A stretch of DNA of 64,000 nucleotides from assembly GCA_002269645.1 (NCBI GenBank), contig NIVC01000349.1:62001-126000 (forward strand). Direction: 5' to 3'. How positions within the stretch are numbered: position 1 is the first letter of the stretch; each line of letters begins with the position of its first letter. The notes under the pieces were generated by a model. The model was not told the DNA's origin. It was given only the letters and a program-made list of their open reading frames with translations, and did no database searches. The translations under genes were made by a program, and so were the position numbers. This document shows positions 36,374 through 64,000 of the stretch, one piece after another. This stretch comes from Macrostomum lignano (taxonomy: Eukaryota).

Positions 36374-36464
36374 TATGCGCTGATATACAACTCGTACTGA
36401 CTACTTAGCTAGTTTCAGAACACTTCAATACAGTCAGCCGCTGTTCTCTGAGTCTTTGTAGCTC

Positions 36465-37262: not shown

Positions 37263-37525
37263 GATAATGTGGCATCTGGGTGGGGAATCAGTCAGATTTG
37301 GGATCTGGGAGATGGGATCACACGATTCAGCCACCCCAGCTCCCCAGTGGCCGAGTCAGTTCCTAAGCTGACATTCCAGTCTGTCCGGGCCCTCGGCTGA
37401 GCAGAAATTTCAGACGAGGTCATCAGTGAGAGCTTCGATTCTGGGCTGAATTTCGGCAGGAACCTTATTGCGAATATTGGTGAAAGTTTGGTGAAAGTTT
37501 CTGACTGTATATTACAGGTGAATCA

Positions 37526-43000: not shown

Positions 43001-44178
43001 CCGATGTTGGGAAAACAGCTCTCTGAAGTCGGCTTCCTCCTCCTCCGACAGGCCACACGAACCCCACTCACAGAATTCTTCGATCGGGTTCCATGCTTCC
43101 GTTTCATTCTTGGCCTCTCGTCCAAGCGCACTACGTTGACACCTCCGTTCGGTTCCAAAGGAATAAACCAGCCAATCGTCTCTCCCTTCTTGACCCTCAT
43201 TCTACAACTGGATGTATTCAGCAATCTCGTCGGCAGCCGTCCATCCTCGCCGGGCGCTACCAGAGCTCGGGCCAGCGCCAACTCCTTCTCAGCGGCCTTC
43301 ACGGCTTTTCTTCCGTTATGCCAACCGATCCGCAGTTTCTTGCGCCCTTTTTCTGCACCCTGGCTGACATGATCACTTCTTGCGCAGGTTCCAGAAATAC
43401 CGTTGTATCGGCTTTTATTCGACACACCACAAGCAGCTCGCCTTTCTGCCGTATTGGAACTTTAACATCACCAACTCGAAAGACAAACTCGGAATAGTGG
43501 ATGACGCAACGATGCTGTTTGAAAAATTCGGACCCGAGGATTACGTCATAACGCAATACATCCACTACAAAAAAATTCGCTGACCACCGCTCGCCGCCAA
43601 TCTCCACGTCCAGCACAATGCAGCCTCTCATCCTCATCGCACCTCCATTGGCCGTTAAAAGGGAACCGTCCATTCCAGTCAGTCTCTCCCTCACCTCTTG
43701 CGGCAGCCTCAGGAAAACATCCCAGCTCAGCACTGACACACTTGCACCACTGTCTAACAGCAGAGCCACTGGCTTGCCGGAAACCGCACCGGAACTAAAA
43801 ACTGTCAAGGACTCCGTTGAGACCGACGAACACGCCTCTTGAACCAGGTTGCTTTTTGAATTCCCATCACCAGAGACGCACTTGGATTTATTTACAGGGT
43901 TAGTGAGCAACACCGGTTCCTCGCTCCTGGGAGACTCTCCCCGGTCGGTCCCCTCGGCCCATTTCCCGACTTTGGACACTTGAAGGATAGGTGGCCTTCA
44001 CCGTTGCACTTGTGACATCGTACTGGCGATTTCCCGTTTCCACTTGTCTGGCTGGTCTTCTTGGGACACTTTGATGAGATATGGCCCCACTCTCGACACA
44101 AAAAACACTGCACCGCCTTCCGACTCGCCGGGGTCGGCTCTGCCGCTTCTCCAGACCTCCGCTCCTCCATCTAGCTCG
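40071..44178 (-). mobile_element. Decayed Ty3/Gypsy internal region (gag end, PR, RT, RNase H, IN), no LTRs, copy 1
   Basis: Two CCHC knuckles (CFLCREWGHISSKC, CHKCNGEGHLSFKC), LLDSGAS protease, SPWCSPVVCVKKKDGSLRFCCDYRKLN and YLDD RT, FVLDTDGS RNase H, HHCC plus DVIGP/HSDQGRNF/VERFN integrase. The PR-RT-RH-IN order is Gypsy. Stops and frameshifts present. Confidence 0.93.
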
Positions 44179-44867
44179 TATTTTAGCATGCCGCATGAAC
44201 TGACAACTCTTGTATCAGGTGCTTACTACTGTGAGTAGCAGTGCAGCATGCGGAAGGTAGGGAATCCCAACTCTCCCTTCCCGTTCAGGTCTCAGACTGA
44301 AAACTTAGAAGCGCGCTATGCTACTTATGGCCAGTAGGCTAAATATGTACACATTTACGCGCTTTTCAGTAACTTGACCTTTATTTGTTAGTTTATGTTA
44401 CAAACATTTTCCGTTTTTCATTGCTCTTGCTATTCTTTGTTATGAAATTTGTGGCTTGCTGAAATGCGAGTGAGAGGGAGGGTGTGAGAGGGAGAGTGTG
44501 AGAGGGAGAGTGTAAAAAGGAGAGTGTGGGAGGGAGAGTGTGGGAGGGAGGGTGTGAAAAGAAAGGTGTGAAAGGAAAGATTTGAGCTGGGTGCCAAAAG
44601 CAAATGTCAAGAATGTCAGTGGATGTCAGACAGCATGACTGGTGAATGTCAGTGGATGTCAGACGGCATGACTGGTGAATGTCAGTGGATGTCAGACGGC
44701 ATGACTGGTGAATGTCAGTGGATGTCAGACGGCATGACTGGTGAATGTCAGTGGATGTCAGACGGCATGACTGGTGAATGTCAGTGGATGTCAGACGGCA
44801 TGACTGGTGAATGTCAGTGGATGTCAGACGGCATGACTAGTGAATGTCAGACGTCAGAGCTCTGCAG

Positions 44868-45313
44868 CCCCCCCTCCGCTCCCTTCCAACCCGGCGTCAG
44901 CAGCGGCCAAGAACCCCCTGATCAGCCCGCTGTCCTCGCACCCTGCCGGAGTCCTTGGCGGAGCCGGAGGCAGCGGAGGCGGTGGCGCAGGAGGCAGCGC
45001 AGGCGCAGGCGGGCTGATCTCGCGGTCCTCGCTGCTGCTGACTCCCATGAAGCCGCTGGCTGAGGAGGCCGCCAGCTTCGGCGGTCACCGCGGCGGCCCC
45101 GGCGGCGACTTCCTCGGCGAGGCGGACTTCCCCGACCGCGGCGCCGACGCGGCCTCTGAAGACAGCGACGGCGGTGACGGGGGCAGCCGGCGCCGGAATC
45201 CCTTCAACGAGGACTGCGGCGGGCGGATGCGGAAGAGCAAGTCGGAAAGGGCACAGCTGACGCAGTCCATGTACCTGGACAGGGACACCTCGTGGGCGGC
45301 CTTCCAGCAGCAG
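44868..45313 (+). CDS. KIF13: Duplicated KIF13 penultimate exon, copy B (intact)
   Basis: Near-identical to 33837-34287. CTGCAG acceptor in phase 1, donor at 45314, no frameshift. Confidence 0.6.
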
Positions 45314-45634
45314 GTGAGGATGTAAGGGAATCGGTCAGGTGGGATGTGAAGGAATCGGTCAGATGAGGGAATCGGTCAGGTGGGATGTGAGGGAATCGGT
45401 CAGGTGGGATGTGAGGGAATCGGTCAGGTGTGGTGTGAGGGAATTGATCAGGTGGGATGTGAGGGAATCGATCAGGTGGGATGTGAGGGATTCGGTCAGG
45501 TGGGATCTGAGTGGGGAATCAGTCAGATGGGATCTGAGTGGGGAATCAGTCAGATGGGATCGAAGTGGGGAATCAATCAGATGGGATCTGAGTGGGGAAT
45601 CAGTCAGATGGGATGTCAAACCTGCCGCTCTCAG

Positions 45635-46558
45635 GAGGTGCCGCAGTCCGTGGACTCCGCAGTCCTCGAGACCTCGCAGCCGCAACCCGCTGAGCCCCCG
45701 GAAGCTCCGTCGCCGACGCAGCCGCCGCCCCCGCCGGTGGGCACCGCGGCGGAGCAGCCGCCGGAGGCCGCGGAGGCCGGCGAAGGCGAGGGCCTTGTCC
45801 GCCTCACCCGCCTGCTGCAGAGCCCCAAGCGATCCGCCCAGAAGGCGCCGAACGGCGGAGGTGGTGACGAGGAGTTCTCCGACAGCGCGTCGGCCTTCGG
45901 CTCCCGACAGGACCTCAGCGGCTCCGGCAGGGTGGACACCGCGCCGCCAGCCTGGCTGAAGCCGGGCGAGCCGTGTCTGGTGCAGCAGCCGCAGGGCGCG
46001 AAGCTGCCGGGTCACGTGAGGTTCTGCGGCCCCACCCAGTTCGCGGCGGGCACCTGGGTGGGGGTGGAACTAAACCAGCCCGAGGGCCGCAACGACGGCT
46101 CGGTGAAGGGCGTCAAGTACTTCAGGTGCAGGGCCCGGCACGGCCTGTTCGTCAGGCACGACAAGGTGCTGCAGCCGCGGAGGAGGGCGTCGCAGCAGAT
46201 GAAGACTGGAAAAATGAGGGCTGCGGCTCTCGTTTGGAGTTCTCCATCAGCCTCTCCATCAGCCTCTCCAGCTTCCCCATCAGTCTCTCCAGCTTCCCCC
46301 ATCAGCCTCTCCAGCTTCCCCATCAGCCTCTCCAGCTTCTCCATCAGCCTCTCCAGCTTCTCCATCAGCCTCTCCAGCTTCTCTACCAGCCTCTCCAGCT
46401 TCCTCATCAGCCTCTCCAGCTTCTCCATCAGCCTCTCTAGCTTCCCCATCAGCCTCTCCAGCTTCCTCATCAGCCTCTCGCTTTTCCCAGTCTATGGGCC
46501 AAACCCCACTGAGGCTGCAAGCTTCCCTGTGCTGCATCAGTCCAATTCCCATTGCTGA
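45635..46558 (+). CDS. KIF13: Duplicated KIF13 terminal exon with intact CAP-Gly, copy B
   Basis: Continuous ORF EVPQSVD...SPKRSAQK...GTWVGVELNQPEGRNDGSVKGVKYFRCRARHGLFVRHDKV...SHC-stop. Confidence 0.65.
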   Translation, partial: EVPQSVDSAVLETSQPQPAEPPEAPSPTQPPPPPVGTAAEQPPEAAEAGEGEGLVRLTRLLQSPKRSAQKAPNGGGGDEEFSDSASAFGSRQDLSGSGRVDTAPPAWLKPGEPCLVQQPQGAKLPGHVRFCGPTQFAAGTWVGVELNQPEGRNDGSVKGVKYFRCRARHGLFVRHDKVLQPRRRASQQMKTGKMRAAALVWSSPSASPSASPASPSVSPASPISLSSFPISLSSFSISLSSFSISLSSFSTSLSSFLISLSSFSISLSSFPISLSSFLISLSLFPVYGPNPTEAASFPVLHQSNSHC

Positions 46559-49500
46559 TCACCTCAAGCAATGCTCAGTCACCTGTCAATCAAAGCCGAT
46601 CAGCCTCGAGTCCCCACAACCAGTTTCAGTCCCATCCAGTCCCCAGTTAATCTGCATTCATTCCCCAGTCACAGTTCCAACAATCTTCTCTGTTGCATAA
46701 TCGAACTGATTTATTTATTGTGATGTACTACTGATTCACAATTTGTTATAAGTAGTAAGTCATGCGTTTTGTGCGTCTTTTTTTTCACGCAGTTCTTCAG
46801 TCCCAAGGAAAGTATTCCATTAAATGCTGCTATTGGCCTTTTTTACGAATTGGAATTGCTTGTCAGTTTTGCTTTTTTATTTCCTGAGTCGATTGCCTTC
46901 ACCCCGGGTGGCACTGCAGTCTGTCAGTATTTGTGTCACCTTCAGTACCTGCTGTTCGACTCCTTCATTCATTTGGTGATTTTGTCCCAAACCATGCGGT
47001 CTGTCTCGACCTGGACTGTCACCTCCCAATGTGATTGACATTGTCTGCGGATTAAAGCTTTTGTGTTTTTTACCTGCATCTGCATTGACAACTAATAAAT
47101 ATGCGCTGATATACTACTCGTACTGACTACTTAGCTGGTTTCAGAACACTTCAATACAGTCAGCCGCTGTTCTCTGAGGCCTTGTAGCTCAATGTGGAAG
47201 ATTACATGTAGCTCAATATGGAAGATTACATGTAGCTCAATATGCAAACATGTAGCTCAATATGGAAGATTACATGTAGCTAAATATGGAAGATTACATG
47301 TAGCTCAATGTGGAAGATTACATGTAGCTCAATATGGAAGATTACATGTAGCTCAATATGGAAGATTACATGTAGCTCAATATGGAAGATTACATGTAGC
47401 TCAATATGGAAGATTACATGTAGCTCAATATGGAAGATTACATGTAGCTCAATATGGAAGATTACATGTAGCTCAATATGTAAGATTACATGTAGCTCAA
47501 TATGTAAGATTACATGTAGCTCAATGTGGAAGATTACATGTAGCTCAATATGGAAGATTACATGTAGCTCAATATGGAAGATTACATGTAGCTCAATATG
47601 GAAGATTACATGTAGCTTAATATGGAAGATTACATGTAGCTCAATATGGAAGATTGCATGTAGCTCAATGTGGAAGATTACATGTAGCTCAATATGGAAG
47701 ATTACATGTAGCTCAATATGGAAGATTACATGTAGCTCAATATGGAAGATTACATGTAGCTCAATATGGAAGATTACATGTAGCTCGATATGGAAGATTA
47801 CATGTAGCTCAATATGGAATATTACGGGTAGCTCAATGTGGAAGATTACATGTAGCTCAATATGAAAATTACATGTAGCTTAATATGGAAGATTACATGT
47901 AGCTCAATATGGAAGATTGCATGTAGCTCAATATGGAATATTACATGTAGCTCAATATGGAAGATTACATGTAGCTCAATATGGAAGATTACATGTAGCT
48001 TAATGTGGAATATTACATGTAGCTCAATACTAGCTGGGGTAGGCTGTCTGCCAGAATCCAGAATTCTAATCTCCCTGGTAGACTTGAGCAATTTAAATAG
48101 ATTTAAATAGAAAATTCTGAGTGAGTTTTCTTATCAGTTGGGGTTGATGCAATCTTTAAAATTGGTAGTGAAGTTTCTCGCTGATAAAATTTGCATTAAA
48201 AAAGCCCATTTAAAACAGTTTTTTCGAATATTTAATCATCTTAGCATTGAGCTAGAGCTTAATAAAATTACATGTACCGTCCCGGGCACATTTGACATCT
48301 TTTGGCGAAGAAACGGAGAAAATCGGTTGAGCCTTTCGGGAGATAATCGATTTCGAACAAGCAAGCAATATGGAAGAACTCCCATCACCGGAATTCCATT
48401 CCCTGAATTATCCATCAACTGAAATTCCATGTCTTGAACCCTATCTTCCAAATCGTCTCCAAATTCTTTACAAAACCTTTCAAAGACCATAGCTCAAAGA
48501 CTCTCACGTCTCTCATATCTCCTCTCTCCTCTCTTCGCTATTATCATGACTCTCTTCTCTCTCCTCTCTCTCATCTCATCTCTACCCTACTCCATTATTT
48601 ATCTCTTTTCCCTCGTCTTTCGTCTGCACCCTCTCCTGTCTCAGTCTCCTCTCTTCTCTCATATCTCTCCTCTTCACTTCTGCCTCCTGTCTCCTCTCTT
48701 CTCTCCTCTCTCATATCTTATCTCTACTCACTTATCTATCGTCTCTCCTTAACCCCCTCTCTCTCTTCTCTTTTCTCTCCTCTCTGCTCTCATTTCTCAT
48801 ATCTCATATACGCTCTCACACTCTACTTTCTTATCTCCCATCTTTCTTTCCTCCTTTCCACTATCCCCTGTCTCTTCGCTTCTCTCTTTTTATCCTCTCC
48901 ATTCTCTCTTTTCTCCTCTCCTTGCTCCTTTCATCTTCTCCCCTCTCTTCTCTAATCTCTAATCTCTTCTCTCTTTTGTTCTCACTCATCTCTTTTCTCA
49001 TCGCATCTCTCATCTCTCCTCTCCTCACTACTTTCCTCTCTTAACTCTCTCATCTCTGATCTTTCATCTCTCTCCTCTCTTCTCTCTCTCTTCTCCTTTC
49101 GCTTCTCTCTCCTCTCTCTCCTCTCATCTCTACTACCTTATTTATACCTTCTCCCTGGTCTTTCGTCTCTACTCTCTCCTGTCTCCTTTTTCCCCTCTTC
49201 TCTCCCCTCCTCTCTCATCTCTCATCCCTCATCTCACTCTTTCTTTCTTCTCTACTCTCCTCTCTCATCTCCTCTCTCCTCTTCTCTTCTCTCTCACTCT
49301 TTATTCTCGCCTTACTCTCCTATTCTCTCCCATATGTCATCTCTAATCTCTCCTCTTCTCTTCTCTCTCCCTCTTTATTCTCGCCTTACTCTCCTATTCT
49401 CTCCCATATGTCATCTCTAATCTCTCCTCTCTCATATCTACTCTCTTTTCTATCTTCTCTTTTCTCTTTTCTCTGACTGACTGAAGGTACCAAATCCACC

Positions 49501-49698
49501 GAAATCCTCTCCGTGAAACAGAAATCTATCAAAATTTTCTTTGGGAAATTGAAAGCCATCAAAATCGTCTCCGTGAAACAGAACTTCATCAAATAATACC
49601 CAACATTTCCATGAAATTGCAGTCCATCAAGACTGCTAAATAGAGATCCAAAAGATGCTTTCCATACTTAAAAATATTCAAGTTAGAGGCGTCAGTGG

Positions 49699-49749
49699 TT
49701 AGGGTTAAGGTTAGGGTTAGGGTTAGGGTTAGGGTTAGGGTTAGGGTTA
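49699..49749 (+). repeat. Interstitial telomere-type tract (TTAGGG)x8 with one TTAAGG variant
   Basis: Directly visible. Confidence 0.9.
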
Positions 49750-50439
49750 CCATCATTTCATCGTTCTTTCATTTCATTGCTATCTGTAGCCTACTGGGCA
49801 TTCACTGTGTACACTGAACCCTATCGCCGCCACCCCCAACACGGGGTTTTATTTGAATTGAAGTGTCAGAAAATTTTAAGAATGAGTTCTTCTTGAATGT
49901 TGTGCTTCTTGTTTTCATGAATAAAGCAAGAAAATTATATTCCCGAACTTAGCGTGGCAAGCTCTTTTCAGCAGTATAAGTCTCTCCTCTCAAGGTTTAA
50001 AACTCGGGAACAGTTAGCGTTTGAAATTTCCCAATTTCCCGACTGCCTGCCTGAGAGGCTCGCAAGTTTGTAATCTGTAATTTATAATTTGTGTACATAT
50101 ATCTGTTTATTTTACAGTTTAGAATTGCAGAGCACTTTGTATTGCTGTTATTTTGCATTGAATTTATTTATTTATTTATTTAACATGCTATTTTGGCTAC
50201 TCTCGTAGAGTAGTAAGCTGTTGATGAGCTTGTTTGGGTCATTAGAATTTGCACAATTGTAGTGCGATTGTTTGCACTACAATTTTTAAAACTCACTGCA
50301 GTGCCTGTTTTGTGTATTTGATTTTTCACTATTTAGCTCACTACACTTTCACATTATTTCTTCTGTCACAAACCTAATTCACAAGAGCACTCTTCCATTA
50401 TTAAACATTGGTTTTACAATAAAAATGCAATATTAATGA

Positions 50440-51827
<1,388 letters not shown>

Positions 51828-52015
51828 NNNNNNNNNNNNNNNNNNNNNNNNNNNNNNNNNNNNNNNNNNNNNNNNNNNNNNNNNNNNNNNNNNNNNNNNN
51901 NNNNNNNNNNNNNNNNNNNNNNNNNNNNNNNNNNNNNNNNNNNNNNNNNNNNNNNNNNNNNNNNNNNNNNNNNNNNNNNNNNNNNNNNNNNNNNNNNNNN
52001 NNNNNNNNNNNNNNN
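51828..52015. other. Assembly gap (188 N)
   Basis: Run of N directly visible. Confidence 1.
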
Positions 52016-53646
52016 TTGAGCTACATGTAATCTTCCATATTGAGCTACATGCAATCTTCCATATTGAGCTACATGTAATCTTACATATTGAGCTACATGT
52101 AATCTTACATATTGAGCTACATGTAATCTTACATATTGAGCTACATGTAATCTTCCATATTGAGCTACATGCAATCTTCCATATTGAGCTACATGTAATC
52201 TTACATATTGAGCTACATGTATATTCCATATTGAGCTACATGTAATCTTCCACATTGAGCTACATGCAATCTTCCATATTGAGCTACATGTAATCTTCCA
52301 TATTGAGCTACATGTAATCTTCCATATTGAGCTACATGTAATCTTCCATATTGAGCTACATGTAATCTTCCATATTGAGCTACATGTAATCTTCCACATT
52401 GAGCTACATGTAATCTTACATATTGAGCTACATGTAATCTTACATATTGAGCTACATGTAATCTTCCATATTGAGCTACATGCAATCTTCCATATTGAGC
52501 ACATGTAATCTTACATATTGAGCTACATGTAATATCTCATATTGAGCTACATGTAATCTTCACATTGAGCTACATGCAATCTTCCATATTGAGCTACATG
52601 TAATCTTCCATATTAAGCTACATGTAATCTTCCATATTGAGCTACATGTAATCTTCCATATTGAGCTACATGTAATCTTCCATATTGAGCTACATGTAAT
52701 CTTCCACATTGAGCTACATGTAATCTTACATATTGAGCTACATGTAATCTTCCATTGAGCTACATGTAATCTTCCATATTGAGCTACATGTAATCTTCCA
52801 TATTGAGCTACATGTAATCTTCTCATATTCAGCTACATGTAATCTTCCATATTGAGCTACATGTAATCTTCCATATTGAGCTACATGTAATCTTCCACAT
52901 TGAGCTACATGTAATCTTCCATATTGAGCTACATGTAATCTTCCATATTGAGCTACATGTTGCATATTGAGCTACATGTAATCTTCCATATTGAGCTACA
53001 TGTAATCTTCCACATTGAGCTACAAGGCCTCAGAGAACAGCGCTGACTGTATTGAAGTGTTCTGAAACCAGCTAAGTAGTCAGTACGAGTAGTATATCAG
53101 CGCATATTTATTAGTTGTCAATGCAGATGCAGGTAAAAAACACAAAAGCTTCAATCCGCAGACAATGTCAATCACATTGGGAGGTGACAGTCCAGGTCGA
53201 GACAGACCGCATGGTTTGGGACAAAATCACCAAATGAATGAAGGAGTCGAACAGCAGGTACTGAAGGTGACACAAATACTGACAGACTGCAGTGCCATCC
53301 GGGGTGAAGGCAACCAACTCAGGAAATGAAAAAGCAAAACTGACAAGCAATTCCAATTCGTAAAAAAGGCAATAGCAGCAATTAATGGAATACTTTCCTT
53401 GGGACTGAAGAACTGCGTGAAAAAAAAGACGCACAAAACGCATGACTTACTACTTATAAAAAATTGTGAATCAGTAGTACATCACAATAAATAAATCAGT
53501 TCGATTATGCAACAGAGAAGATTGTTGGAACTGTGACTGGGGAATGAATGCAGATTAACTGGGGACTGGCTGGGACTGAAACTGGTTGTGGGGACTCGAG
53601 GCTGATCGGCTTTGATTGACAGGTGACTGAGCATTGCTTGAGGTGA

Positions 53647-55326
53647 TCAGCAATGGGAATTGGACTGATGCAGCACAGGGAAGCTTGCAGCCTCAGTGGG
53701 GTTTGGCATATAGACAGGGGAAAAGCGAGAGGCTGATGAGGAAGCTGGAGGCTGATGGGGAAGCTAGAGAGGCTGATGGAGAAGCTGGAGAGGCTGATGA
53801 GGAAGCTGGAGAGGCTGGTAGAGAAGCTGGAGAGGCTGATGGAGAAGCTGGAGAGGCTGATGGAGAAGCTGGAGAGGCTGATGGGGAAGCTGGAGAGGCT
53901 GATGGGGGAAGCTGGAGAGACTGATGGGGAAGCTGGAGAGGCTGATGGAGAGGCTGATGGAGAACTCCAAACGAGAGCCGCAGCCCTCATTTTTCCAGTC
54001 TTCATCTGCTGCGACGCCCTCCTCCGCGGCTGCAGCACCTTGTCGTGCCTGACGAACAGGCCGTGCCGGGCCCTGCACCTGAAGTACTTGACGCCCTTCA
54101 CCGAGCCGTCGTTGCGGCCCTCGGGCTGGTTTAGTTCCACCCCCACCCAGGTGCCCGCCGCGAACTGGGTGGGGCCGCAGAACCTCACGTGACCTGGCAG
54201 CTTCGCGCCCTGCGGCTGCTGCACCAGACACGGCTCGCCCGGCTTCAGCCAGGCTGGCGGCGCGGTGTCCACCTGCCGGAGCCGCTGAGGTCCTGTCGGG
54301 AGCCGAAGGCCGACGCGCTGTCGGAGAACTCCTCGTCACCACCTCCGCCGTTCGCGCCTTCTGGGCGGATCGCTTGGGGCTCTGCAGCAGGCGGGTGAGG
54401 CGGACAAGGCCTCGCCTTCGCCGGCCTCCGCGGCCTCCGGCGGCTGCTCCGCCGCGGTGCCCACCGGCGGGGCGGCGGCTGCGTCGGCGACGGAGCTTCC
54501 GGGGGCTCAGCGGGTTGCGGCTGCGAGGTCTCGAGGACTGCGGAGTCCACGGACTGCGGCACCTCCTGAGAGCGGCAGGTTTGACATCCCATCTGACTGA
54601 TTCCCCACTCAGATCCCATCTGATTGATTCCCCACTTCGATCCCATCTGACTGATTCCCACTCAGATCCCATCTGACTGATTCCCCACTCAGATCCCACC
54701 TGACCGAATCCCTCACATCCCACCTGATCGATTCCCTCACATCCCACCTGATCAATTCCCTCACACCACACCTGACCGATTCCCTCACATCCCACCTGAC
54801 CGATTCCCTCACATCCCACCTGACCGATTCCCTCATCTGACCGATTCCTTCACATCCCACCTGACCGATTCCCTTACATCCTCACCTGCTGCTGGAAGGC
54901 CGCCCACGAGGTGTCCCTGTCCAGGTACATGGACTGCGTCAGCTGTGCCTCTCCGACTTGCTCTTCCGCATCGCCCGCCGCAGTCCTCGTTGAAGGGATT
55001 CCGGCGCCGGCTGCCCCCGTCTCCGCCGTCGCTGTCTTCAGAGGCTGCGACGGCGCCGCGGTCGGGAAGTCCGCCTCGCCGAGGAAGTCGCCGCCGGGCC
55101 GCCGCGATGACCGCCGAAGTGGCGGCCTCCTCAGCCAGCGGCTTCATGGGAGTCAGCAGCAGCGAGGACCGCGAGATCAGCCCGCCTGCGCCTGCGCTGC
55201 CTCCTGCGCCACCGCCTCCGCTGCCTCCGGCTCCGCCAAGGACTCCGGCAGGGTGCGAGGACAGCGGGCTGATCAGGGGGTTCTTGGCCGCTGCTGACGC
55301 CGGGTTGGAAGGGAGCGGAGGGGGGG
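53647..55326 (-). pseudogene. KIF13: Third, inverted copy C of the last two KIF13 exons (54886-55326 and 53647-54565), many 1-bp indels
   Basis: Reverse complement of copy B; the CAP-Gly reads through in ORF 53505..54272 but upstream parts are frameshifted. Confidence 0.7.
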
Positions 55327-56013
55327 CTGCAGAGCTCTGACGTCTGACATTCACTAGTCATGCCGTCTGACATCCACTGACATTCACCAGTCATGCCGTC
55401 TGACATCCACTGACATTCACCAGTCATGCCGTCTGACATCCACTGACATTCACCAGTCATGCCGTCTGACATCCACTGACATTCACCAGTCATGCCGTCT
55501 GACATCCACTGACATTCACCAGTCATGCCGTCTGACATCCACTGACATTCACCAGTCATGCTGTCTGACATCCACTGACATTCTTGACATTTGCTTTTGG
55601 CACCCAGCTCAAATCTTTCCTTTCACACCTTTCTTTTCACACCCTCCCTCCCACACTCTCCCTCCCACACTCTCCTTTTTACACTCTCCCTCTCACACTC
55701 TCCCTCTCACACCTCCCTCTCACTCGCATTTCAGCAAGCCACAAACTTTCATAACAAAGAATAGCAAGAGCAATGAAAAACGGAAAATGTTTGTAACATA
55801 AACTAACAAATAAAGGTCAAGTTACTGAAAAGCGCGTAAATGTGTACATATTTAGCCTACTGGCCATAAGTAGCATAGCGCGCTTCTAAGTTTTCAGTCT
55901 GAGACCTGAACGGGAAGGGAGTTGGGATTCCCTACCTTCCGCATGCTGCACTGCTACTCACAGTAGTAAGCACCTGATACAAGAGTTGTCAGTTCATGCG
56001 GCATGCTAAAATA

Positions 56014-59000
56014 CGAGCTAGATGGAGGAGCGGAGGTCTGGAGAAGCGGCAGAGCCGACCCCGGCGAGTCGGAAGGCGGTGCAGTGTTTTTTGTCGAGAG
56101 TGGGGCCATATCTCATCAAAGTGTCCCAAGAAGACCAGCCAGACAAGTGGAAACGGGAAATCGCCAGTACGATGTCACAAGTGCAACGGTGAAGGCCACC
56201 TATCCTTCAAGTGTCCAAAGTCGGGAAATGGGCCGAGGGGACCGACCGGGGAGAGTCTCCCAGGAGCGAGGAACCGGTGTTGCTCACTAACCCTGTAAAT
56301 AAATCCAAGTGCGTCTCTGGTGATGGGAATTCAAAAAGCAACCTGGTTCAAGAGGCGTGTTCGTCGGTCTCAACGGAGTCCTTGACAGTTTTTAGTTCCG
56401 GTGCGGTTTCCGGCAAGCCAGTGGCTCTGCTGTTAGACAGTGGTGCAAGTGTGTCAGTGCTGAGCTGGGATGTTTTCCTGAGGCTGCCGCAAGAGGTGAG
56501 GGAGAGACTGACTGGAATGGACGGTTCCCTTTTAACGGCCAATGGAGGTGCGATGAGGATGAGAGGCTGCATTGTGCTGGACGTGGAGATTGGCGGCGAG
56601 CGGTGGTCAGCGAATTTTTTTGTAGTGGATGATTGCGTTATGACGTAATCCTCGGGTCCGAATTTTTCAAACAGCATCGTTGCGTCATCCACTATTCCGA
56701 GTTTGTCTTTCGAGTTGGTGATGTTAAAGTTCCAATACGGCAGAAAGGCGAGCTGCTTGTGGTGTGTCGAATAAAAGCCGATACAACGGTATTTCTGGAA
56801 CCTGCGCAAGAAGTGATCATGTCAGCCAGGGTGCAGAAAAAGGGCGCAAGAAACTGCGGATCGGTTGGCATAACGGAAGAAAAGCCGTGAAGGCCGCTGA
56901 GAAGGAGTTGGCGCTGGCCCGAGCTCTGGTAGCGCCCGGCGAGGATGGACGGCTGCCGACGAGATTGCTGAATACATCCAGTTGTAGAATGAGGGTCAAG
57001 AAGGGAGAGACGATTGGCTGGTTTATTCCTTTGGAACCGAACGGAGGTGTCAACGTAGTGCGCTTGGACGAGAGGCCAAGAATGAAACGGAAGCATGGAA
57101 CCCGATCGAAGAATTCTGTGAGTGGGGTTCGTGTGGCCTGTCGGAGGAGGAGGAAGCCGACTTCAGAGAGCTGTTTTCCCAACATCGGGCTGTCTTTGCT
57201 AAGGACTCCAAGGATCTCGGCTGTACGACCGTGATGAAGCACGAGATCGACACTAGTGATGCCAGGCCTGTGAAGGAAGCGGCGAGACGGATTCCCCCGT
57301 ACCTGCGGCAGGAAGTGGACAAGGAGTTGGACGACTTGTTGGAAGCTGGAAGAATCAGCGAGGTCCAGTCCCCATGGTGCTCTCCAGTGGTGTGCGTGAA
57401 AAAGAAGGACGGTTCACTGAGGTTCTGTTGTGACTACCGGAAACTGAATGAAGTGACCAAGAAGGATGCAGTGCTTTTGCCTAGGACAGATGACCTGTTG
57501 GAGAGCCTAGGCGGTGCCAAGATTTTTTCGACCATAGACATGCAGTCGGGATACTGGCAGATGGCGGTGGAACCCAGCGACAGACTAAAGACGGCCTTTG
57601 GCGTTTCACACCGGGTGCAGCAGTACGCCTGGAACGTTATGCCATTTGGATTGACGAATGTGCCGGCTTCATTCAGCCGACTAATAAATGTAGTGTTGGG
57701 GAAGTTGTGCTCGAAGTTGTTTGGTGTATCTGGACGACCTGCTAGTGTGGTCAAGAACGGTGGAGGAGCACCTGGAGCGGCTGCAAACGGTTTTTCGTCG
57801 GTTGCGAGCAGGGAACATCAAATTGAAGCCGAAAAAGTGCGCATTCTTGTTGAAGTCAGTGACTTTCCTTGGACACGTAGTGTCAGCTGATGGAATCACC
57901 ACGAGTTCAGAAAAGATTGCTGAAATTCGTGACTGGCCAACGCCGAAGAATGCCAAGGAAGTAAGGTATTACCGGCAGTTTATCGCAGATTTTTCCCGCA
58001 TTGCTGAGCCGATGCTGCGACGGACCCGACAGGATTGCCCGTGGAGCTGGGATGAAGAGTGACAAGCCGCATTCGAGGCCCTGAAAGTTTGCAGGGATCG
58101 GAGGTCATGGCGTTTCCAAACTTTGCGGAGGACGCTGGAGAATTCGTTTTAGACACGGACGGTAGCACAAAAGAAGGAATTAGCGCTGTGCTTTCACAAG
58201 TGCAGAAATATGGAAGTGAGAAGTAATAGCTTACGGGAGCAGGACGTTGTCGCGAGAAGAACGGAATTACTGCACGACACTAGTCGAGTTGCTGGCCGTG
58301 GTGTTTTTCGTACAGAAGTTTCGTTATTACCTGATGGGGCGAGAGTTTCTAGTGCGCACCGATCACAGCAGCTTGAAGTGGCTGCATTCGCTGCGGGACG
58401 TAGAAGGACAGCTGGCCAGATGGCTAGAGCTCTTGGCACCGTACAAGTATCGCATCGAACATCGTTCTGGAGTCAAACATCAACACGCAGACGCTCTCTC
58501 CAGGAAGCCACGTCGGCGCCATCAAAGAAGCGAGAGTTGTCCCGGATGTGCACAAGAGCAGATCGGCGTGAACGCGTTGGGATTACAGAGGTGGACCTCG
58601 GAGGAGATCAGGGAGAGCCAGAAGATGGACAGCGACATTCGTCAGGCGATGGAGCTGCTGGCACACGGCGACGGAGAGATTACCGAAGAGCATTTGCGAC
58701 GCATCTCACCGACGGCAAGGAGGATTGTCGAAAGACGTCGTGACCTTGAGGTGTCAGACAGTGAGGTGCTGCTGTGTCATACGGGCAGTGGACGTCACCC
58801 GCAAGTGGTGTTGCCACGGAATATGCTGAGAGCGGTGCTGGAAGAGGCTCATGCCAGACGGAGTGGAGGGCACGTCGGGATTTTCAAGACCAAGGAGAAG
58901 GTGCAGCAATCGTTCTGGAGGCCTGGACTTGGCCGCGAGGTCGAAGAGCACGTAAAAGCCTGTTTGGACTGCACCAAGGCCAAGACTGGCAAGAGACCGG

Positions 59001-60118
59001 TTGCACCGATGGAGCCGATTCCGAGTTCAAGCCCATTCGATATCAAGATGACGGACGTCATCGGGCCGCTGCCACGGAGCAAGAAAGGAAACTTCTATAT
59101 CCTCACGGTGCAAGATGCGTTCTCAAAGTGGCCAGACGCTTATGCCATCCGGAACCAGAAGGCGACAACGATTGCAAGAGTGCTATTCGAACGCTGGATT
59201 GCCAATCACGGGTGCTCCCGGGTACTTCACTCGGACCAAGGAAGGAACTTTGAGTCGGGGATCGTCAGGAAGCTGTGCGAGCTGTTGGGTGTAAAGAAGA
59301 CCAGGACGAGCGCCTACCACCCGAGTGGCAACAGACAGGTGGAACGATTTAACGGGTTCCTGAAGAAAAGTTTGCGCACGTATCTGGTAGAGAAGGGTCA
59401 GAACGCCTGGGAGGAGTACCTGCCAAGTGCCTTGATGGCTTATCGATCGACGGTCCAGGCGTCCACCGGTTACACGCCCTGCTACATGCTGCATGGTCAG
59501 GAGATGCTGCTGGGATTCGAACCAGAGGACCTTAGGCAAAAGACGGACAGCTATCCCTCGTTTGTGCAAGAGATCCAGCAGAACCTGCTTCATGCCCATG
59601 AACACGTTCGAGAAGGTCGCGAGACGGTTCAGCGACGACAGAAAATGAACTACGATCGGAAAGTGAAGGGCAAGGCGATTCAGAAGGGTGACACTGTCTT
59701 GCTGTACTATCCGTGCTTGGAGGTGGGAGAGAAAAGCAAGTTTCATATCAACTGGCGCGGCCCAGTGAATGTCCTGGAGAAGCTGTCAGACGCGTTGTAC
59801 CGGGTCCAGGACCCGAGGAATCCAAATGCAAGTGCAAGGTGGTACACTACAATAACCTTAGACTGTGTGCCGAGGAGCAGAAGGGAGACTGTCAACCGGG
59901 TGGCATGATGAAGCGGCAGGACACGAGGAACAAGAAGCAGAAGAGTCAGAAACCAGCACCTTACCCGAAGGAACGGAGGGGAGTGGAACAGGATGAGAAT
60001 GCTGAGAAGGACGACGACGAGGACGACATCTTCTGGCTGGTGCAACGGTTCTCCACCGTCAAGAGGTGCCAAGCGGGCGGCCATCCGGCCGGCAAAGAGA
60101 GAACCGGGGGGGGGGGGT
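56014..60118 (+). mobile_element. Decayed Ty3/Gypsy internal region, copy 2
   Basis: Reverse complement of 40071-44178 with shared lesions plus extra 1-bp indels. Confidence 0.93.
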
Positions 60119-63100
60119 GGGAGAGAGGCTCGCGAACATAGTGTAAAAGCTATGTTTCGTGGGCAAACCTTCTCCTATCAGAGTGGCTCTGGACCGACCA
60201 CACAGAGCACCTCCCTAAACAATATCAAGGTCAAAAACCCGATGAAAACGAGAATGGAGAAGAACGGAAGAGAGACAGAGACGGAAAACAGACGCACCGC
60301 AGAAGTCATCTTTCGCCTGCAATCGATCGAGAAGAACCCCGGACCAAGAACACAAGGCCAGAAGGCCGCGAGAAACAAACGCCGTAAACGAAAGCGGGAG
60401 GATGACCGCAGGAAAAAAACAGACAGGCGTAGACTAAGGGCCACCGAACGCTGGTCGAACAGCAAGATCGAAGTAGCAACCTGGAACACACAGAGGGCCA
60501 ACATCGGATCAGCCAGATTCGGCGAAATGGTAAAAGTTGCCTTGGAAAAATGGGACATTACGTTAATGACAGAACTAAACACAAAGGGCGTAGGAATAAG
60601 AAAGTTCCACCATCTGAAGCAAGACGCCTACTTAGTTCACTCCCATAAGGTTGGAATCCTGTTAAGCAACACCGCATGGACTCTGTGGGACGCCAGCGGA
60701 CGAAAAATACATCCGGCCGAGCGCACCCTGGCGATCGAAATCGACAAAGTCACCCTGATGGCGGTCTACCATCCGTTCAAGGGAAGTGAGAACTACGAAA
60801 CCGACCTGGAAACTATCCGCACCGAGATCGAACGCATCAAACATACGGTTGCTAAAAGATCACTACTTTTAATCGGAGGCGATGTCAACTTGAGCATAGG
60901 CAGAGACCAGAACAGAAATTTCGTCAGCACCGGCAAGTTCGGCATCGGAGACACGAATGACCAAGGAATAGATATGCTAGCGTGGATGGAGAGCCTGAAC
61001 CTAGTGTGGGCAAGCTCCTTCTACCAGCAAAACGAACGTGGCACATGGAAAAACCCGGCCTCAAAGCGCTGGTACGAGCTCGACGGTTTCATACTGAAGA
61101 AAGAACAAAGGCAACGAATCGTCCAACGGATCAGAACGGACCATGGATCCTCACTCTCTGACCATCTGCCAAAAGTACTGACTCTGCACCGGCAGTTCGC
61201 CGAGCGGTACTGCGCACCGAACAAGCACTATCCACAAAACACAAAAAAGAGAGAGAACATCACCTGGGAACGGCTGCGAGTCACTCAAGTGCAGGAAGAG
61301 TACAAAAAAGCAACCAGTGAGGCCTGGGAGAAGCTCAAAAGACCAACCAACAGTGAAACCGAGAACCGAACAGCGCCCGACCCACCGTGGCAGGAAGTCG
61401 AAAGGGAAGTCCTCGAAGCCGCCAAGCGTATCTGTGGAGTGAAAAGCAGGCAAACTAACTGCTGGCTTATCGGACATGAACAGGAATTACAACAACTAAA
61501 CCGAGCAATTGCCGAAGCATTGGCCCAACGCAACAGCACGCGGAAGGACCCAGAAGAACACTAGTCGCAATACAACACAATGCGGGCAGAGCAGGCTAAG
61601 GAGCACATTAAAAATTGCAGAAAAGCACAAAAAACAAGCTCCAGGAATGGGAGGATCAATTGTGGACAGGTATAGCGGAAGAGTGCAGACATAACTGTGA
61701 GATCGGCAACACCGGAGGAATGTATGAATGCCTAAGAAAAATTGGGAAGGCCAGCAACCCGAACATCAACAACGGGAAAACGCTCCCAATGTTCTCGGCC
61801 GAAGCTTTTAAAGACCACCTAGCGCTTGTCCAGAACCAACGTTTCGAAAACGACCCGGAGACCATGTTCTCCCTCCTGCGCAGCGCGCCAGGACCAACGG
61901 GTGATGGTGTATCGCTACACCGCGCGAACGAAGAAATAGACAAAGATCTTCTCGACAGCGAGATCGAAACGGAACTTAGAAAGATCAGGGACGGCGCGCC
62001 GGAGGAGGACGGAATCCGAATCCGATACCTCACCGGAGCCTGCAGGGAGGTCCGTGCAGCGTTGCGATCAGAAATCCACCGACTGTGGCAAACACCAGCC
62101 CCATAGTGGGACGACCAGGAGAAGACCGGCCTAATAATCCCGCTGCACAAAAAGGGCGACCGGTCCAACCTCAACAACTTTCGCGGCATCTGCCTTCTAC
62201 CAAGCGTCAGTAGGATCATCGCTTGAATCCTAGCAACCCGTGTAGGGACCTGGGCCGAGCAGATTGGCATCCTGGACGAGAACCAAGCCGGTTTCCACAA
62301 AGGCCGCTCCACGATGGACCCCACACAAGTTCTACTGAGGCTAAACGAGGACGCGGAAAAGCTGCGGGACAGCCCAGACTTTGTGGATTCCATGAACGGT
62401 GAGATAACGCTCCTCGATCTGCGAAAGGCGTACCCTCGGGTTAACAAACCAGCATTGTGGGAACTGCTGAAGCATTACAACATGCCCGACCGTGTCATCG
62501 CGAAGCCCCGCGACCTGCACGAGCACACCATGTACAAGGTGATGTCCGACAAAGAAGTCAGTACCGGCTTCTTCCCTCAACGAGGCCTCCGAGAAGGCTG
62601 CGCTACCTCACCTACACTGTTCAACGTTTACCACCAAGCAATCATCCGCCTCGCAGAGACGAAACGTGCCGAAAGAGCCACGGCTATCGGACTCGAGCAT
62701 GATATACGGTGGACTACACGCTCTGGGCACAGTTTACCACCCCAACGTGTCAACATCTACAACGAGGAAACCACAGAGGTGAACATCTCCATATCGCTGT
62801 TCGCGGACGACACGACGATCATTGGCACAAGAGCTGAGTGCCAGCTCGGCACACAGACCGTAAAGGAAATAATGGGCACGCTGGAAGAACGCACTAACGA
62901 CGACAAGGAAGAACATGCGGTCTTAGGAACTGAAGAGGCTAAGAAAATCCGAATGCTCGGGACCTGGCTGGGAAGAAAAGAAGACCTAGGCCAGAGACTG
63001 CAAAGGGGGGCCAGAGCGTGGGCGGGCGTGCGCAACATGCTACGCCGCACTCGACTGAGCAAGAAGACCCAAGCCAGAGTGGTCGAGGCCTGCGTTGAGA

Positions 63101-63243
63101 GCACGATGCTTTTCAACGCCGGAGCGCGCCCTTTCCAAAAAGGAGAAATTCGCAAACTGCAACAAGCAATGGATCGGCGGTATCGAACAATATGGAGTAG
63201 CAAGTCGAAACCACCGCTGATCGAAATGGAGGTCGATCGGGAC
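60119..63243 (+). mobile_element. Decayed APE-RT LINE (RTE-like), copy 2, longer but still 3'-truncated
   Basis: Same as copy 1 and continues through LFADDT and MLGTWL to WSSKSKPPLIEME. TAG stops at 61562 and 62104 and a TGA at ~62224 are shared with copy 1. Confidence 0.9.
60323..60346 (+). other. 2A-like ribosomal skipping motif SIEKNPGP (second copy at 39843-39866, - strand)
   Basis: AEVIFRLQSIEKNPGP lies ~40 codons upstream of the APE domain. Matches the ExNPGP core; the canonical D is replaced by S. Confidence 0.6.
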
Positions 63244-64000
63244 TGACAGAAACTGAACAAAGCTGCTGTTGCTCCGAGTCAGCCTGAAGTACATGGTCCA
63301 CTCTGCTGTGTTCCAAATCGACTCATTGAATGCCACGGGAGCTCCGACATTGTAGAACTCCCCATAACTGGCACTGAAATTCTGCTTGAAGCAGGCCCCC
63401 TCCTCTGCCGACCTCTCCACGCCGAACTGGTCCTCGATGGCGAAGGTACGCGGGTACACCAGGTTGTCGAGGCCCCTCCTGAAGTCGAACGCAGCCACGA
63501 GGTCGCCAACCTGCGCCTCCGTCTTGCACACGAACCTGTGCCTGCTGTGGCACCTGTCACTGCGCAGTCGACCAGCTGACAGCGTGACGCAGTTCACAGT
63601 CCAGTCCGCACTGTCCGGGTGTCCAGTCTCCCATGCGGGCAGCTTGTTGTCGTGTTTCCCTAAGAAATCCGTCCACTGGTAGCAGAGCTCGCGACCCGCA
63701 CTGTCAGGGAAGCAGGGGTTCAGCTTGATGAGGCCGAGCCACACCGAGTCGAGCAGCTCTGCCGACTCGCAGCTGTCGATTCCGAAGCTGAGCTTGTTCA
63801 CAAAGTCCAGCTCAGACTGGGTGAGTACCGACGCCAGCTGCGACGAGTTTCGCTGGCAGTAGAAGTTGGCCTCGTTGAAGTTGGCCTCAAACTGCGGCAT
63901 CACGTAGCACTGCTCGTCGTGCAGCCACCAGCCGCTGGGACATCGGCCCTTCGACCGCCACCACAAGTCGACGAGACTGCTGGAGTTGGCGCTCAACTTG
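63244..64000 (-). CDS. C-type lectin domain protein, partial (enters from the window edge, breaks off at the LINE junction)
   Basis: CPSGWWLHDEQCY...ANFYCQRNSSQLASV...VWLGL...YQWTD...WETGHPD...NCV...DRCHSRHRFVCK is a canonical CTLD Cys/Trp pattern. Confidence 0.85.

Follow-up and report, generated by a model that had tools for sequence, protein, structure and literature searches.

A Ty3/Gypsy remnant and a 2A-bearing LINE lying head to tail in Macrostomum lignano

Two retroelements in an inverted duplication

The window, a stretch of 64,000 nucleotides of contig NIVC01000349.1 of Macrostomum lignano, holds two copies of the same arrangement, in which a fragment of a Ty3/Gypsy retrotransposon is followed in the same orientation by a LINE with an APE-type endonuclease and a reverse transcriptase (RT). 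The copies and their main parts are:

37526..62663, no strand: inverted duplication with arms 37526-47709 and 52501-62663 (10.2 kb, 99.4% identity)
37526..44176, minus strand: copy 1, with the same Gypsy fragment and LINE as copy 2 but in the opposite arm; its LINE breaks off inside the RT at 37526
38625-40475, minus strand: through-frame ORF of copy 1 (616 aa), with SIEKNPGP at 39843-39866 and KVVHYNNLR at 40326-40352
56016..59889, plus strand: copy 2, Ty3/Gypsy internal region, 5'-truncated (Pfam, frame map, tblastn to Gypsy pol proteins)
56092-56214, plus strand: gag CCHC knuckles (motif coordinates)
56430-56450, plus strand: protease DSG (motif coordinates)
57727-57747, plus strand: RT YLDD (motif coordinates)
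58247-59908, plus strand: RNase H and integrase ORF, with the integrase HSDQGRNF at 59228-59251
59991..63237, plus strand: copy 2, single-ORF APE-type LINE, 5' complete and 3' truncated (tblastn, ORFs, Pfam RVT_1)
60467..61174, plus strand: APE endonuclease domain, IEVATWN to LSDHLPK (family profile, catalytic motifs)
61615..63237, plus strand: LINE RT, with FADD at 62800-62817 (Pfam RVT_1, E = 7.2e-12)

The Gypsy region matches the Pfam families zf-CCHC, Asp_protease_2, RVT_1, RT_RNaseH, Integrase_H2C2 and rve, and in Pfam and the frame map the order protease, RT, RNase H and integrase is present together with a gag zinc knuckle. With the Ty3/Gypsy elements (Metaviridae) it shares this order behind the gag CCHC, the VHxNNLK motif at the integrase C-terminus and a polypurine tract that is followed by an LTR starting with TGT. 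It differs from them in that there is no 5' LTR, most of gag is gone, the 3' LTR is at most partial, pol has several frameshifts (seen as frame changes in the frame map of copy 2) and the tail frame has no stop codon. Comparison with a paralogous flank puts the 5' breakpoint in gag at 56016, straight against flanking sequence that is not transposon-derived. Two flanking LTRs are absent, and the region has no direct repeat in the window besides the inverted arm.

The LINE spans aa 4-972 of a 1161-aa relative in tblastn, and lies in three ORFs (59993-61564, 61615-62106 and 62314-63246) with at least one frameshift (near 61565-61615) and an in-frame stop (62104-62106). The APE domain named in the preliminary description of this DNA is real, though by family profile only: a 20-sequence profile matched AP endonuclease/ExoIII structures in the PDB at E = 1.5e-8 and the motifs TWN, TELN, GGDVN, ELDG and SDH were located, while the window sequence alone stays below the Pfam threshold. 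The LINE relatives exceed the Pfam Exo_endo_phos thresholds. The RT follows the APE without a change of strand and aligns in tblastn to aa 431-972 of P0123. In full-length relatives one ORF encodes leader, 2A, APE, RT and a zinc finger; in the window the homology stops at ...PPLIEME (63211-63231) and the C-terminal ~190 aa are missing. No intact LINE end was found, and the match to relatives breaks off at aa 972 of 1161 (window position 63237). Both elements are truncated and frameshifted according to the frame map, and dead, as had been described.

The spacer between the arms holds satellites and an N gap (51828-52015), an assembly gap near the centre of the inverted duplication. Over the transposon part, 6.8 kb in length, the arms are 99.85% identical (3 substitutions and 5 indels). 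The two copies of the preliminary description are the arms of a single inverted duplication and not independent observations, and what they represent is one junction, duplicated. No further copy of either element was found in the window.

The boundary between the Gypsy fragment and the LINE

The following features, all on the plus strand, define the boundary in copy 2:

59825..59835, plus strand: frameshift with ~1 nt lost, between RVQDPRNP (59801-59824) and KVVHYNNLR (59836-59862), in both copies
59836..59862, plus strand: KVVHYNNLR, conserved integrase C-terminal motif and last clearly Gypsy-coding sequence
59878..59893, plus strand: CAGAAGGGAGACTGTC, polypurine tract AGAAGGGAGA (59879-59888) and LTR start TGTC (from 59890)
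59890..59990, plus strand: putative 3' LTR, whole or truncated, ~100 nt, TGT...ACA, with a provisional 3' limit
59992..60027, plus strand: LINE 5'-terminal GAN/GAY codon-like repeat, translating as DENAEKDDDEDD (DNA collinearity)
60042..60100, plus strand: conserved LINE 5' DNA block, GCAACGG..CTCCACC..AGAGGTGCCAAGCGGGC..GGCAAAGAGA (local alignment)
60106..60117, plus strand: G12 run of copy 2, inside the LINE 5' region and not at the junction
60139..60141, plus strand: TAG that ends the KVVHYNNLR frame of copy 2; in copy 1 it lies in another frame
60152..60154, plus strand: nearest ATG (MFRGQ...) in the 2A frame downstream of the LINE 5' end, 62 codons before NPGP
60323..60346, plus strand: SIEKNPGP, 2A-like (StopGo) motif, 47 codons upstream of the APE TWN

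In the Gypsy relatives KVVHYNNLR aligns with KVVHFNNLK, QVVHFNNLR or KTVHSNNLA, and ...RVQNPRNRARTKVVHFNNLK is read in one frame across the counterpart of the 59825..59835 frameshift. In the window RVQDPRNP and KVVHYNNLR are in different frames in both copies, and the integrase ORF therefore stops in the other frame, at the TGA at 59906-59908. The integrase thus does not run on into the tail, contrary to what had been proposed, and this shift, together with others within pol and within the LINE, leaves no single open frame through pol, 2A, APE and RT.

The preliminary description also held that no LTR separates the elements. We found a polypurine-tract/LTR-start motif at 59878-59893, beginning 16 nt past KVVHYNNLR and identical at 16 of 17 positions to the motif directly after the pol stop in L004, the closest Gypsy relative. 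With at most one error allowed it is the sole match in the 64-kb window besides its own duplicate, and none of 100 shuffled windows contained a match. The Gypsy element of L006 has the same layout (stop, AGAGAGGGAGTAG, then an LTR starting TGTAAG...), and LTRs in the Gypsy relatives are short (121 nt in L006, 154 nt in L003). The start of the putative LTR is set by the motif and its 3' limit, at 59990, by the point where LINE homology starts; the exact junction we infer to lie within 59894-60041.

From there on, the sequence is that of a LINE 5' end. The GAN/GAY repeat is collinear with (GAY)n runs at L001 (245-280) and L009 (2716-2770), each of which lies at the boundary of an AT-rich flank and a LINE, and positions 59992-60135 as a whole are collinear at the DNA level with the LINE 5' ends of these two independent loci, the upstream flanks of which are AT-rich and Gypsy-free. 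The LINE 5' limit rests on this collinearity. DDDEDDIFW, previously taken for the acidic tail of Gypsy, is the translated (GAY)n repeat at the 5' terminus of the LINE. At the protein level the stretch is also like acidic runs in Gypsy tails (P0002, p = 0.007), and we set aside any protein-level assignment of the acidic run, the next 26 aa and the leader as non-discriminating, Gypsy tails and LINE leaders scoring alike; the origin of the acidic stretch is decided solely by the collinearity of the DNA with the LINE loci.

The conserved block (aligned over 60037-60105) scores 15.5 to L001 and 19.0 to L007 in local alignment, whereas 3000 segments from elsewhere in the window reach at most 13.5 and 698 segments from other loci at most 14.0, and it has no match in the 3' regions of the Gypsy relatives. 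These ~60 nt have been kept at the DNA level though the APE regions of the elements are only 30-41% identical, and may serve as an internal promoter or RNA element. No description of the (GAY)n terminus and the conserved block was found in the literature searched on 2A-bearing LINEs. The G-run has counterparts in L001 (GAGAACGAAACAG) and L009 (G5), and the L007 5' region has a G8 run. A stable hairpin at the LINE 5' end (z = -3.5) involves the G-run and is not conserved in L001; no meaningful Rfam match to an HDV-like ribozyme or other known RNA was obtained there.

Several other candidates near the boundary were discarded. The purine tract with G-run at 60094-60128 is not the Gypsy polypurine tract, as it is collinear with LINE 5' regions and the real motif is that at 59878-59893; no complete short LTR with terminal inverted repeats was found after 60119 or 60142. 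Two stretches, 59936-60009 and 59863-59935, seemed to match L002 and L005, respectively, but these matches are non-collinear or of low complexity. The alternative-frame SRGAKRAAIRPAKRE was considered as the Gypsy terminal motif RRYPxRNRxPxRY, and an HMM of 23 relatives gave no significant match in any frame; in the LINE leaders, too, the HMM of the Gypsy tail terminal motif found nothing.

The open frame of copy 1 does exist as described: KVVHYNNLR, DDDEDDIFW and SIEKNPGP, followed by the APE motifs, lie within 616 codons, and the reported ~165 stop-free codons are 166, from KVVHYNNLR (aa 42) to NPGP (aa 208). The homopolymer difference is confirmed as well: copy 1 has 11 C at 40072-40082, where copy 2 has 12 G at 60106-60117. 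Of the claim that frame continuity depends on this run, one part stands, in that its length picks the upstream frame that is joined to the 2A, but the run is inside the LINE and not at the junction. Copy 2, too, has an open frame, from 59912 through the 2A motif. Like its relatives, the LINE would natively lack stops in the 2A frame over more than 100 codons before NPGP, which would leave ~43 T-poor codons from the pol end and the LTR as the only ones that had to be stop-free; the run length (11 or 12) would select the frame joined. The computed chance of an open bridge is ~0.21, times 1/3 for the frame, an argument that hangs on the natively open LINE leader because a random 96-codon stretch of the same composition is stop-free only ~3% of the time.

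The 2A-like motif and the relatives of both elements

The motif x(I/V)(E/H)xNPGP occurs in at least 26 of the LINE relatives, at a distance of 38-112 residues from the APE on its N-terminal side, among others as DIEPNPGP, DVEKNPGP, NIEKNPGP, TIEKNPGP and TIHPNPGP. SIEKNPGP has S at the canonical D position, where the relatives have D, T, N, G or C. A Met is found 7-137 residues before NPGP in the relatives, and P0001 (E = 1e-73) has its own Met, then DIEPNPGP and then the APE; in the window the ATG at 60152..60154 is a plausible LINE start codon. The relatives have both motif and leader, with start codons of their own and no Gypsy upstream, and judged from the sequences both of these, like the conserved 5' DNA block, belong to the LINE lineage. 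In intact members, going by published assays, the ribosome would skip the G-P bond at the motif, which would free a short N-terminal leader from the APE-RT protein.

A 2A upstream of the APE has been published for ~50 LINEs (Odon et al. 2013, PMC3708506), in the APE-type clades L1Tc/Ingi, CR1, Crack, L2 and Rex1, and known variants include E to H in Crack elements and D to Q in one active element. The window LINE agrees with these in having x(I/V)ExNPGP N-terminally in a long ORF, directly upstream of the APE and then the RT, and its relatives likewise have a single long ORF. It differs in the S at the canonical D, in that its 2A is putative and the copy dead and 3'-truncated, and in the conserved 5' DNA block and (GAY)n terminus that its lineage adds. 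With the viral 2A/StopGo sequences (of picornaviruses and others) the motif shares the C-terminal NPGP after (I/V)Ex and, by analogy, the expected ribosome skipping at G-P, whereas in the LINE lineage it would split only a short, poorly conserved leader from the APE-RT and not two functional polyprotein domains.

An exhaustive search gave 953 LINE relatives. Among the best 150 of these, none has an integrase upstream and none has an alignment that reaches into the N-terminal 100 residues of the fused ORF; in all of them the APE starts at protein position 236 or before, leaving no room for an integrase. None of six LINE-relative loci shows a LINE preceded by a Gypsy integrase end; four of them have short upstream flanks (144-318 nt in L001, L002 and L007, 104 nt in L008). 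In L008, an independent contig, a same-lineage LINE is followed by Gypsy RNase H-integrase, the reverse of the order in the window. None of the four Gypsy-relative loci contains a LINE; the Gypsy relatives end normally, with stop, polypurine tract and LTR and no LINE downstream. Close relatives of the window elements were absent from a search of 5.8 billion proteins (best LINE match 36% identity, best Gypsy match 54%), and none were found by exact-protein look-up or in metagenome contigs.

Origin and meaning of the junction

We consider it highly probable that the Gypsy remnant and the LINE are separate dead retroelements lying head to tail, that their join is fortuitous and that there is no hybrid element. 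The arrangement is in all likelihood an ordinary transposon pile-up of a Gypsy remnant beside a LINE, and not a new hybrid, because the 2A-like signal is the LINE's own, as in its relatives. Of the two readings offered in the preliminary description, that of a LINE which landed in frame by chance is favoured: 2A, leader and 5' DNA block are traits of the LINE lineage, the Gypsy relatives end normally, a polypurine tract and LTR start lie between the elements, and the two copies are one duplicated locus. For the other, a co-translated Gypsy-2A-LINE hybrid, no positive evidence was found, and it was partly built on an acidic stretch given to the wrong element.

The Gypsy part would have lost its 5' LTR and most of gag, running from 56016 to the KVVHYNNLR of the integrase C-terminus and on through the polypurine tract at 59879-59888 into the first ~100 nt of the 3' LTR. 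From ~59991 a single-ORF APE-type LINE would start at its own 5' terminus, in the order (GAY)n repeat, conserved 5' block, G-run, variable leader, SIEKNPGP, basic stretch, APE and RT, to be cut at 63237. Most likely the LINE inserted into, or just past, the Gypsy 3' LTR; rearrangements would then have cost the Gypsy its 5' end and the LINE its 3' end, and the whole block would finally have been duplicated once and inverted, be it in the genome or as an assembly artefact. As in other nested or adjacent insertions, unrelated elements abut here with no functional link (compare L008); the window differs from these in the shared orientation, in the shared frame of one copy, and in that the target-site duplication and the rest of the LTR are not preserved. 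No target-site duplication, second LTR or LINE 3' end that would establish an insertion could be identified in the window. Nor did a comparison of filled and empty sites succeed: an older paralogous flank (36987 to 32972) stops exactly at the Gypsy breakpoint, and the sequence past it matches the post-LINE sequence of neither copy 2 nor copy 1.

The same block could have arisen in one step, as a chimeric retrocopy, if the LINE RT, on reaching the 5' end of a full-length LINE RNA, had switched to a Gypsy transcript near its 3' end within the LTR, copied back to mid-gag and stopped. A single insertion of 5'-truncated Gypsy and 5'-complete LINE would result, a dead one-off that founds no hybrid family. 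This would require fewer events than an insertion plus deletions, and it is consistent with the shared orientation, with a Gypsy part truncated in gag directly against non-transposon flank at 56016, and with a complete LINE 5' end that adjoins Gypsy ~100 nt into a short LTR, roughly at the end of the Gypsy transcript. Chimeras from template switching by LINE RT are on record, as passages in PMC2104539 and bioRxiv 10.1101/2025.02.02.635956 indicate; in known cases (U6-L1 chimeras, and the MINE/WEIRD chimeras of Magnaporthe, PMC2104539), as would hold here, a copy of another RNA lies 5' and the LINE 3' in direct fusion and one orientation. However, the LINE part of known chimeras is usually 5'-truncated, whereas that of the window is 5'-complete, and the donor would be a retrotransposon RNA; moreover, the junction shows neither poly(A) nor added bases, the LINE 3' end and the target-site duplication that mark a single insertion are missing, and no filled-versus-empty site pair was found. 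We regard such a retrocopy as unlikely, although it is the alternative to be taken most seriously. Considerably less likely is an assembly artefact, in which the junction or the second copy would be a chimeric join or a false inverted duplication. Near-identical arms around a spacer with an N gap and long satellites, differing mainly by small indels of which one is a homopolymer length, would fit it, but the arms also differ by three substitutions and in their ends (copy 1 is cut at 37526, copy 2 runs to 63237), and the junction sequence is identical in both.

A true relic of an LTR/non-LTR hybrid, with Gypsy pol and LINE APE-RT in one polyprotein split by the 2A, appears improbable in the extreme. 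The 616-codon frame of copy 1 that joins KVVHYNNLR to the APE and the position of the 2A motif between them speak for it. One 2026 preprint (PMC13405545) mentions a Ty3-like RT with a 2A-like peptide at its C-terminal end, so that similar juxtapositions exist elsewhere; this, too, counts for the hybrid. Against it, the motif, the leader and the 5' DNA block occur in the LINE lineage without Gypsy, the polypurine-tract/LTR-start motif lies between integrase and LINE, both copies have a frameshift in pol ahead of the tail and no LTR pair surrounds the joined unit. Neither an upstream integrase (none among the best 150 of 953 LINE relatives), a downstream LINE (none in four Gypsy relatives) nor the Gypsy terminal motif in LINE leaders was seen, and the two copies are one duplication. 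A related reading in which the join is not accidental makes the N-terminal 2A an insulator: a LINE in frame behind a translated ORF, here the Gypsy pol/LTR transcript, would be reached by read-through and still release a clean APE-RT, with a Gypsy-2A-LINE hybrid family in the genome as its extreme form. To this, too, we give hardly any credence.

The locus, which we read as two separate dead elements, carries a caution: neither an open frame that crosses from one transposon into another nor near-identical "copies" within one inverted duplication give more than weak support to a hybrid element, and LINEs are already known to have 2A-like motifs upstream of the APE. The LINE of the window has not been described before and belongs to a widespread lineage of single-ORF elements that carry a 2A-like motif at the N-terminus, and a modest by-product of the analysis is the 5' end of this lineage, with its (GAY)n terminus and conserved block of ~60 nt.

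The fused frame and its two copies

All the sequence features on which the preliminary description had based a possible hybrid of LTR and non-LTR elements (a Gypsy pol and a LINE APE-RT translated together and split by a 2A peptide) were found. In copy 1, the minus-strand arm of an inverted duplication, they lie in one ORF of 616 codons, whereas copy 2, on the plus strand, differs in the length of the G-run (12 at 60106-60117, against 11 at 40072-40082 in copy 1). In copy 2 the KVVHYNNLR frame is closed by a TAG at 60139-60141, whereas a second one reads without a stop from 59912 past the 2A motif and into the APE domain (ORF 59993-61564).

Features of ORF 38625..40475 (minus strand, copy 1)
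aa 42, minus strand: KVVHYNNLR
aa 100, minus strand: DDDEDDIFW, followed by a glycine run
NPGP at aa 208, minus strand: SIEKNPGP, followed by the APE motifs

The APE assignment holds at the level of the family but could not be made from the window sequence alone, with which Pfam gave no APE match; a profile of this sequence and 19 relatives matches AP endonuclease/ExoIII structures (E = 1.5e-8), and the catalytic motifs are in place.

The two copies go back to one event: 52501-62663 is 99.4% identical over 10.2 kb to the reverse complement of 47709-37526, and in the transposon part the arms differ by 3 substitutions and 5 small indels, one of which is the G-run. No further copy of either element was found within the window. 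Both copies thus represent a single historical junction, irrespective of whether the duplication is genuine (perhaps a very recent palindrome) or arose in assembly (a false duplication or fold-back). The spacer between the arms contains long satellites and an assembly gap (51828-52015, N). Large repeat arrays occur here and elsewhere, and several of them give long spurious ORFs.

Repeat arrays in the window
36457-37264, 47183-48029, 52016-53024: 24-bp satellite
33317-33819, 44611-44850, 55344-55583: 33-bp repeat
50479-50849: (CTAT)n microsatellite

We also observed a third, older copy of the repeat-rich flank upstream of the Gypsy element (32972-36987, minus strand, 85-94% identity), which stops exactly at the 5' breakpoint of that element; the sequence beyond it matches nothing after the LINE. 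An ORF at 53505-54272 (minus strand) encodes a CAP-Gly domain with a strong Pfam match (E = 4.5e-24) and, after it, minisatellite-like coding repeats rich in serine and proline; paralogues of this ORF lie in the other arm and in 34550-36000.

The 2A motif and the 5' end of the LINE

The only word-index match to the fused ORF was the LINE-relative protein P0001 (36% identity, E = 1e-73), which starts with a methionine of its own; an 87-residue leader, DIEPNPGP, a basic stretch and the APE domain follow in that order, and in-frame stops precede the protein on its contig. An exhaustive search with the same ORF gave 953 relatives; in the best 150 of these no alignment begins before query residue 102 (most begin at 194 or beyond), and the APE domain starts at protein position 236 at the latest, too early for a pol to fit in front of it. 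The motif x(I/V)(E/H)xNPGP is present in at least 26 relatives, 38-112 residues ahead of the APE TWN motif, and full-length relatives are single ORFs of 1161-1323 residues with the order leader, 2A, basic stretch, APE, RT and C2H2 fingers. The same arrangement was described by Odon et al. upstream of the APE domain in about 50 APE-type LINEs, with variants at the D and E positions of 2A that are either tolerated or inactive (PMC3708506), and a 2026 preprint adds 16 species (PMC13405545). Judged by these comparisons, the 2A motif is a feature of the LINE itself, already known for LINEs, and not a divider between Gypsy and LINE products.

The LINE aligns from 60305 to 63237 with residues 4-972 of a 1161-residue relative, so that its coding 5' end is complete and roughly the last 190 residues are missing; its frame shifts near 61565-61615 and is interrupted by an in-frame stop at 62104-62106. 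Directly past the cut-off at 63237 lies an ORF with a C-type lectin domain (63519-63885, minus strand, Pfam E = 3.4e-10), which from stop to stop extends antisense into the LINE RT.

Upstream of the coding part, the 5' regions of two independent loci of LINE relatives align with 60037-60105 (69 nt; scores of 15.5 for L001 and 19.0 for L007, against maxima of 13.5 for 3000 other window segments and 14.0 for 698 segments of other loci); no match was found in the 3' regions of four Gypsy relatives. Multiple alignments placed 59992-60135 collinear with L001 and a third LINE locus, L009, in the common order GAY-codon repeat, GCAAYGG, TC.ACC.TC, GCCAAGCGGGC, GGCAAA and G-rich patch. In L001 and L009 the GAY repeat marks the exact boundary between an AT-rich flank (35-37% GC) and the LINE (45-49% GC), and no Gypsy sequence was found in the 2.7 kb upstream of the LINE in L009 or in the shorter upstream flank (about 250 nt) of L001. 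Because of this collinearity and flank boundary, DDDEDDIFW, taken before as a Gypsy acidic tail, is LINE sequence, namely the repeat at its 5' terminus in translation; the G-run likewise lies inside the LINE and not at the junction. Comparison at the protein level is not decisive here, since acidic runs occur both in Gypsy tails and in LINE leaders. The purine tract with the G-run (60094-60128) was also considered as a Gypsy polypurine tract and was ruled out by the same collinearity.

This 5' region, a (GAY)n terminal repeat and a block of roughly 60 nt (..AGAGGTGCCAAGCGGGC..GGCAAA..), is shared at the DNA level by relatives whose APE is just 30-41% identical to that of the window. Since the position of the start codon is not conserved, the block may act as a promoter or RNA element instead of encoding protein. 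At 60107-60177 the G-run and GGGAGAGAGG can pair with CCTTCTCCTATC in a long predicted hairpin (fold z = -3.5), a pairing that is not conserved in L001.

Common LINE 5' region
window 59992-60135
L001 245-385
L009 2716-2860
L007 85-136

The Gypsy 3' end and the open frame

The Gypsy element shows the Ty3/Gypsy order of gag CCHC knuckles, protease, RT, RNase H and integrase (Pfam, tblastn), lacks a 5' LTR and starts abruptly within gag at 56016, where the older paralogous flank (36987 to 32972) stops matching. Its pol has at least 4 frame changes, one of them, in both copies, between RVQDPRNP (59801-59824) and KVVHYNNLR (59836-59862). Because of this frameshift the integrase ORF ends at 59906-59908 in another frame; it does not continue into the LINE, and of the Gypsy element just the last few dozen codons share the downstream frame.

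Nor is an LTR wholly absent between the two elements, as had been stated. In the locus (L004) of the closest Gypsy relative, P0002 (50% identity), CAGAAGGGGAGACTGTC follows directly 3' of the pol stop, and with at most 1 error this 17-mer occurs in the window just at 59878-59893, beginning 16 nt after KVVHYNNLR, and in the duplicate arm (0 of 100 shuffled windows). In a complete relative (L006) the pol stop is followed by AGAGAGGGAGTAG and a 121-nt LTR that starts with TGTAAG and ends with CTTACA. This match and the layout of L004 and L006 point to a polypurine tract at 59879-59888 and a 3' LTR that putatively starts at 59890. A pol stop, to be expected immediately 5' of the tract, is no longer there in that frame, which is unsurprising where pol has shifted frame several times. 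The two elements meet between 59894 and 60041, most probably close to 59990, after a putative LTR piece of roughly 100 nt, whole or truncated.

In many pol proteins of this Gypsy lineage (P0002, P0004, P0013, P0017, P0022, P0025 and others) the acidic tail, which is variable, leads into a conserved basic motif at the C-terminus, R(R)YPxRxRRxPxRYG...H; this motif is missing from the window copy. In L004 (a Logan contig), a DnaJ-like ORF at 2165-2650 (MFYELLDVPENASASQVKKSYYRLMRHFHPDK...) follows the pol stop by ~100 nt and could reflect a chimeric transcript or gene capture.

In LINE relatives no stop interrupts the 2A frame over the 107-154 codons before NPGP, so the stretch from ~59991 to the 2A motif is open by descent, which leaves just about 43 codons (59863-59990) of non-coding origin. 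At 11.5% T and a per-codon stop probability of 0.035, this bridge is open by chance with a probability of ~0.21, times 1/3 for the frame. The argument rests on the natively open LINE leader, since a random 96-codon stretch is stop-free ~3% of the time. With 11 G the conserved QAG block shares the frame of the 2A motif, as it does in L001, L007 and the LINE-relative protein P0235; with 12 G it is shifted out of that frame.

Origin of the junction

Close relatives of either family were not found in protein collections or metagenome contigs. Among the more distant ones, the LINE is not preceded by a Gypsy integrase end in any of the six LINE-relative loci, and the four Gypsy-relative loci hold no LINE-like sequence. 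L008 (1-5239, ENA ERZ893895) holds a full-length LINE of the window's lineage (P0124, 105-3986) and, from 15 nt past its stop codon, a fragment of Gypsy RNase H-integrase. The two lie in different frames and in the opposite order to the window, which shows that nesting of these kinds of LINE and Gypsy is common and not stereotyped. The 104 nt upstream of that LINE contain a weak Gypsy RNase H-like motif, a layout unlike a simple insertion.

Insertion of a LINE into or beside a Gypsy LTR with deletions afterwards fits the window arrangement, as does a single template switch, in which the LINE RT would have jumped from the 5' end of the LINE RNA to a Gypsy transcript. The latter takes fewer steps to reach a 5'-truncated Gypsy joined to a complete LINE 5' end; the LINE 3' end, a target-site duplication and an empty site, all missing from the locus, would be needed to tell the two apart. 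With either origin, two dead retroelements have piled up in an ordinary way; the 2A motif is a known LINE feature, and a Gypsy-2A-LINE hybrid element is very unlikely.
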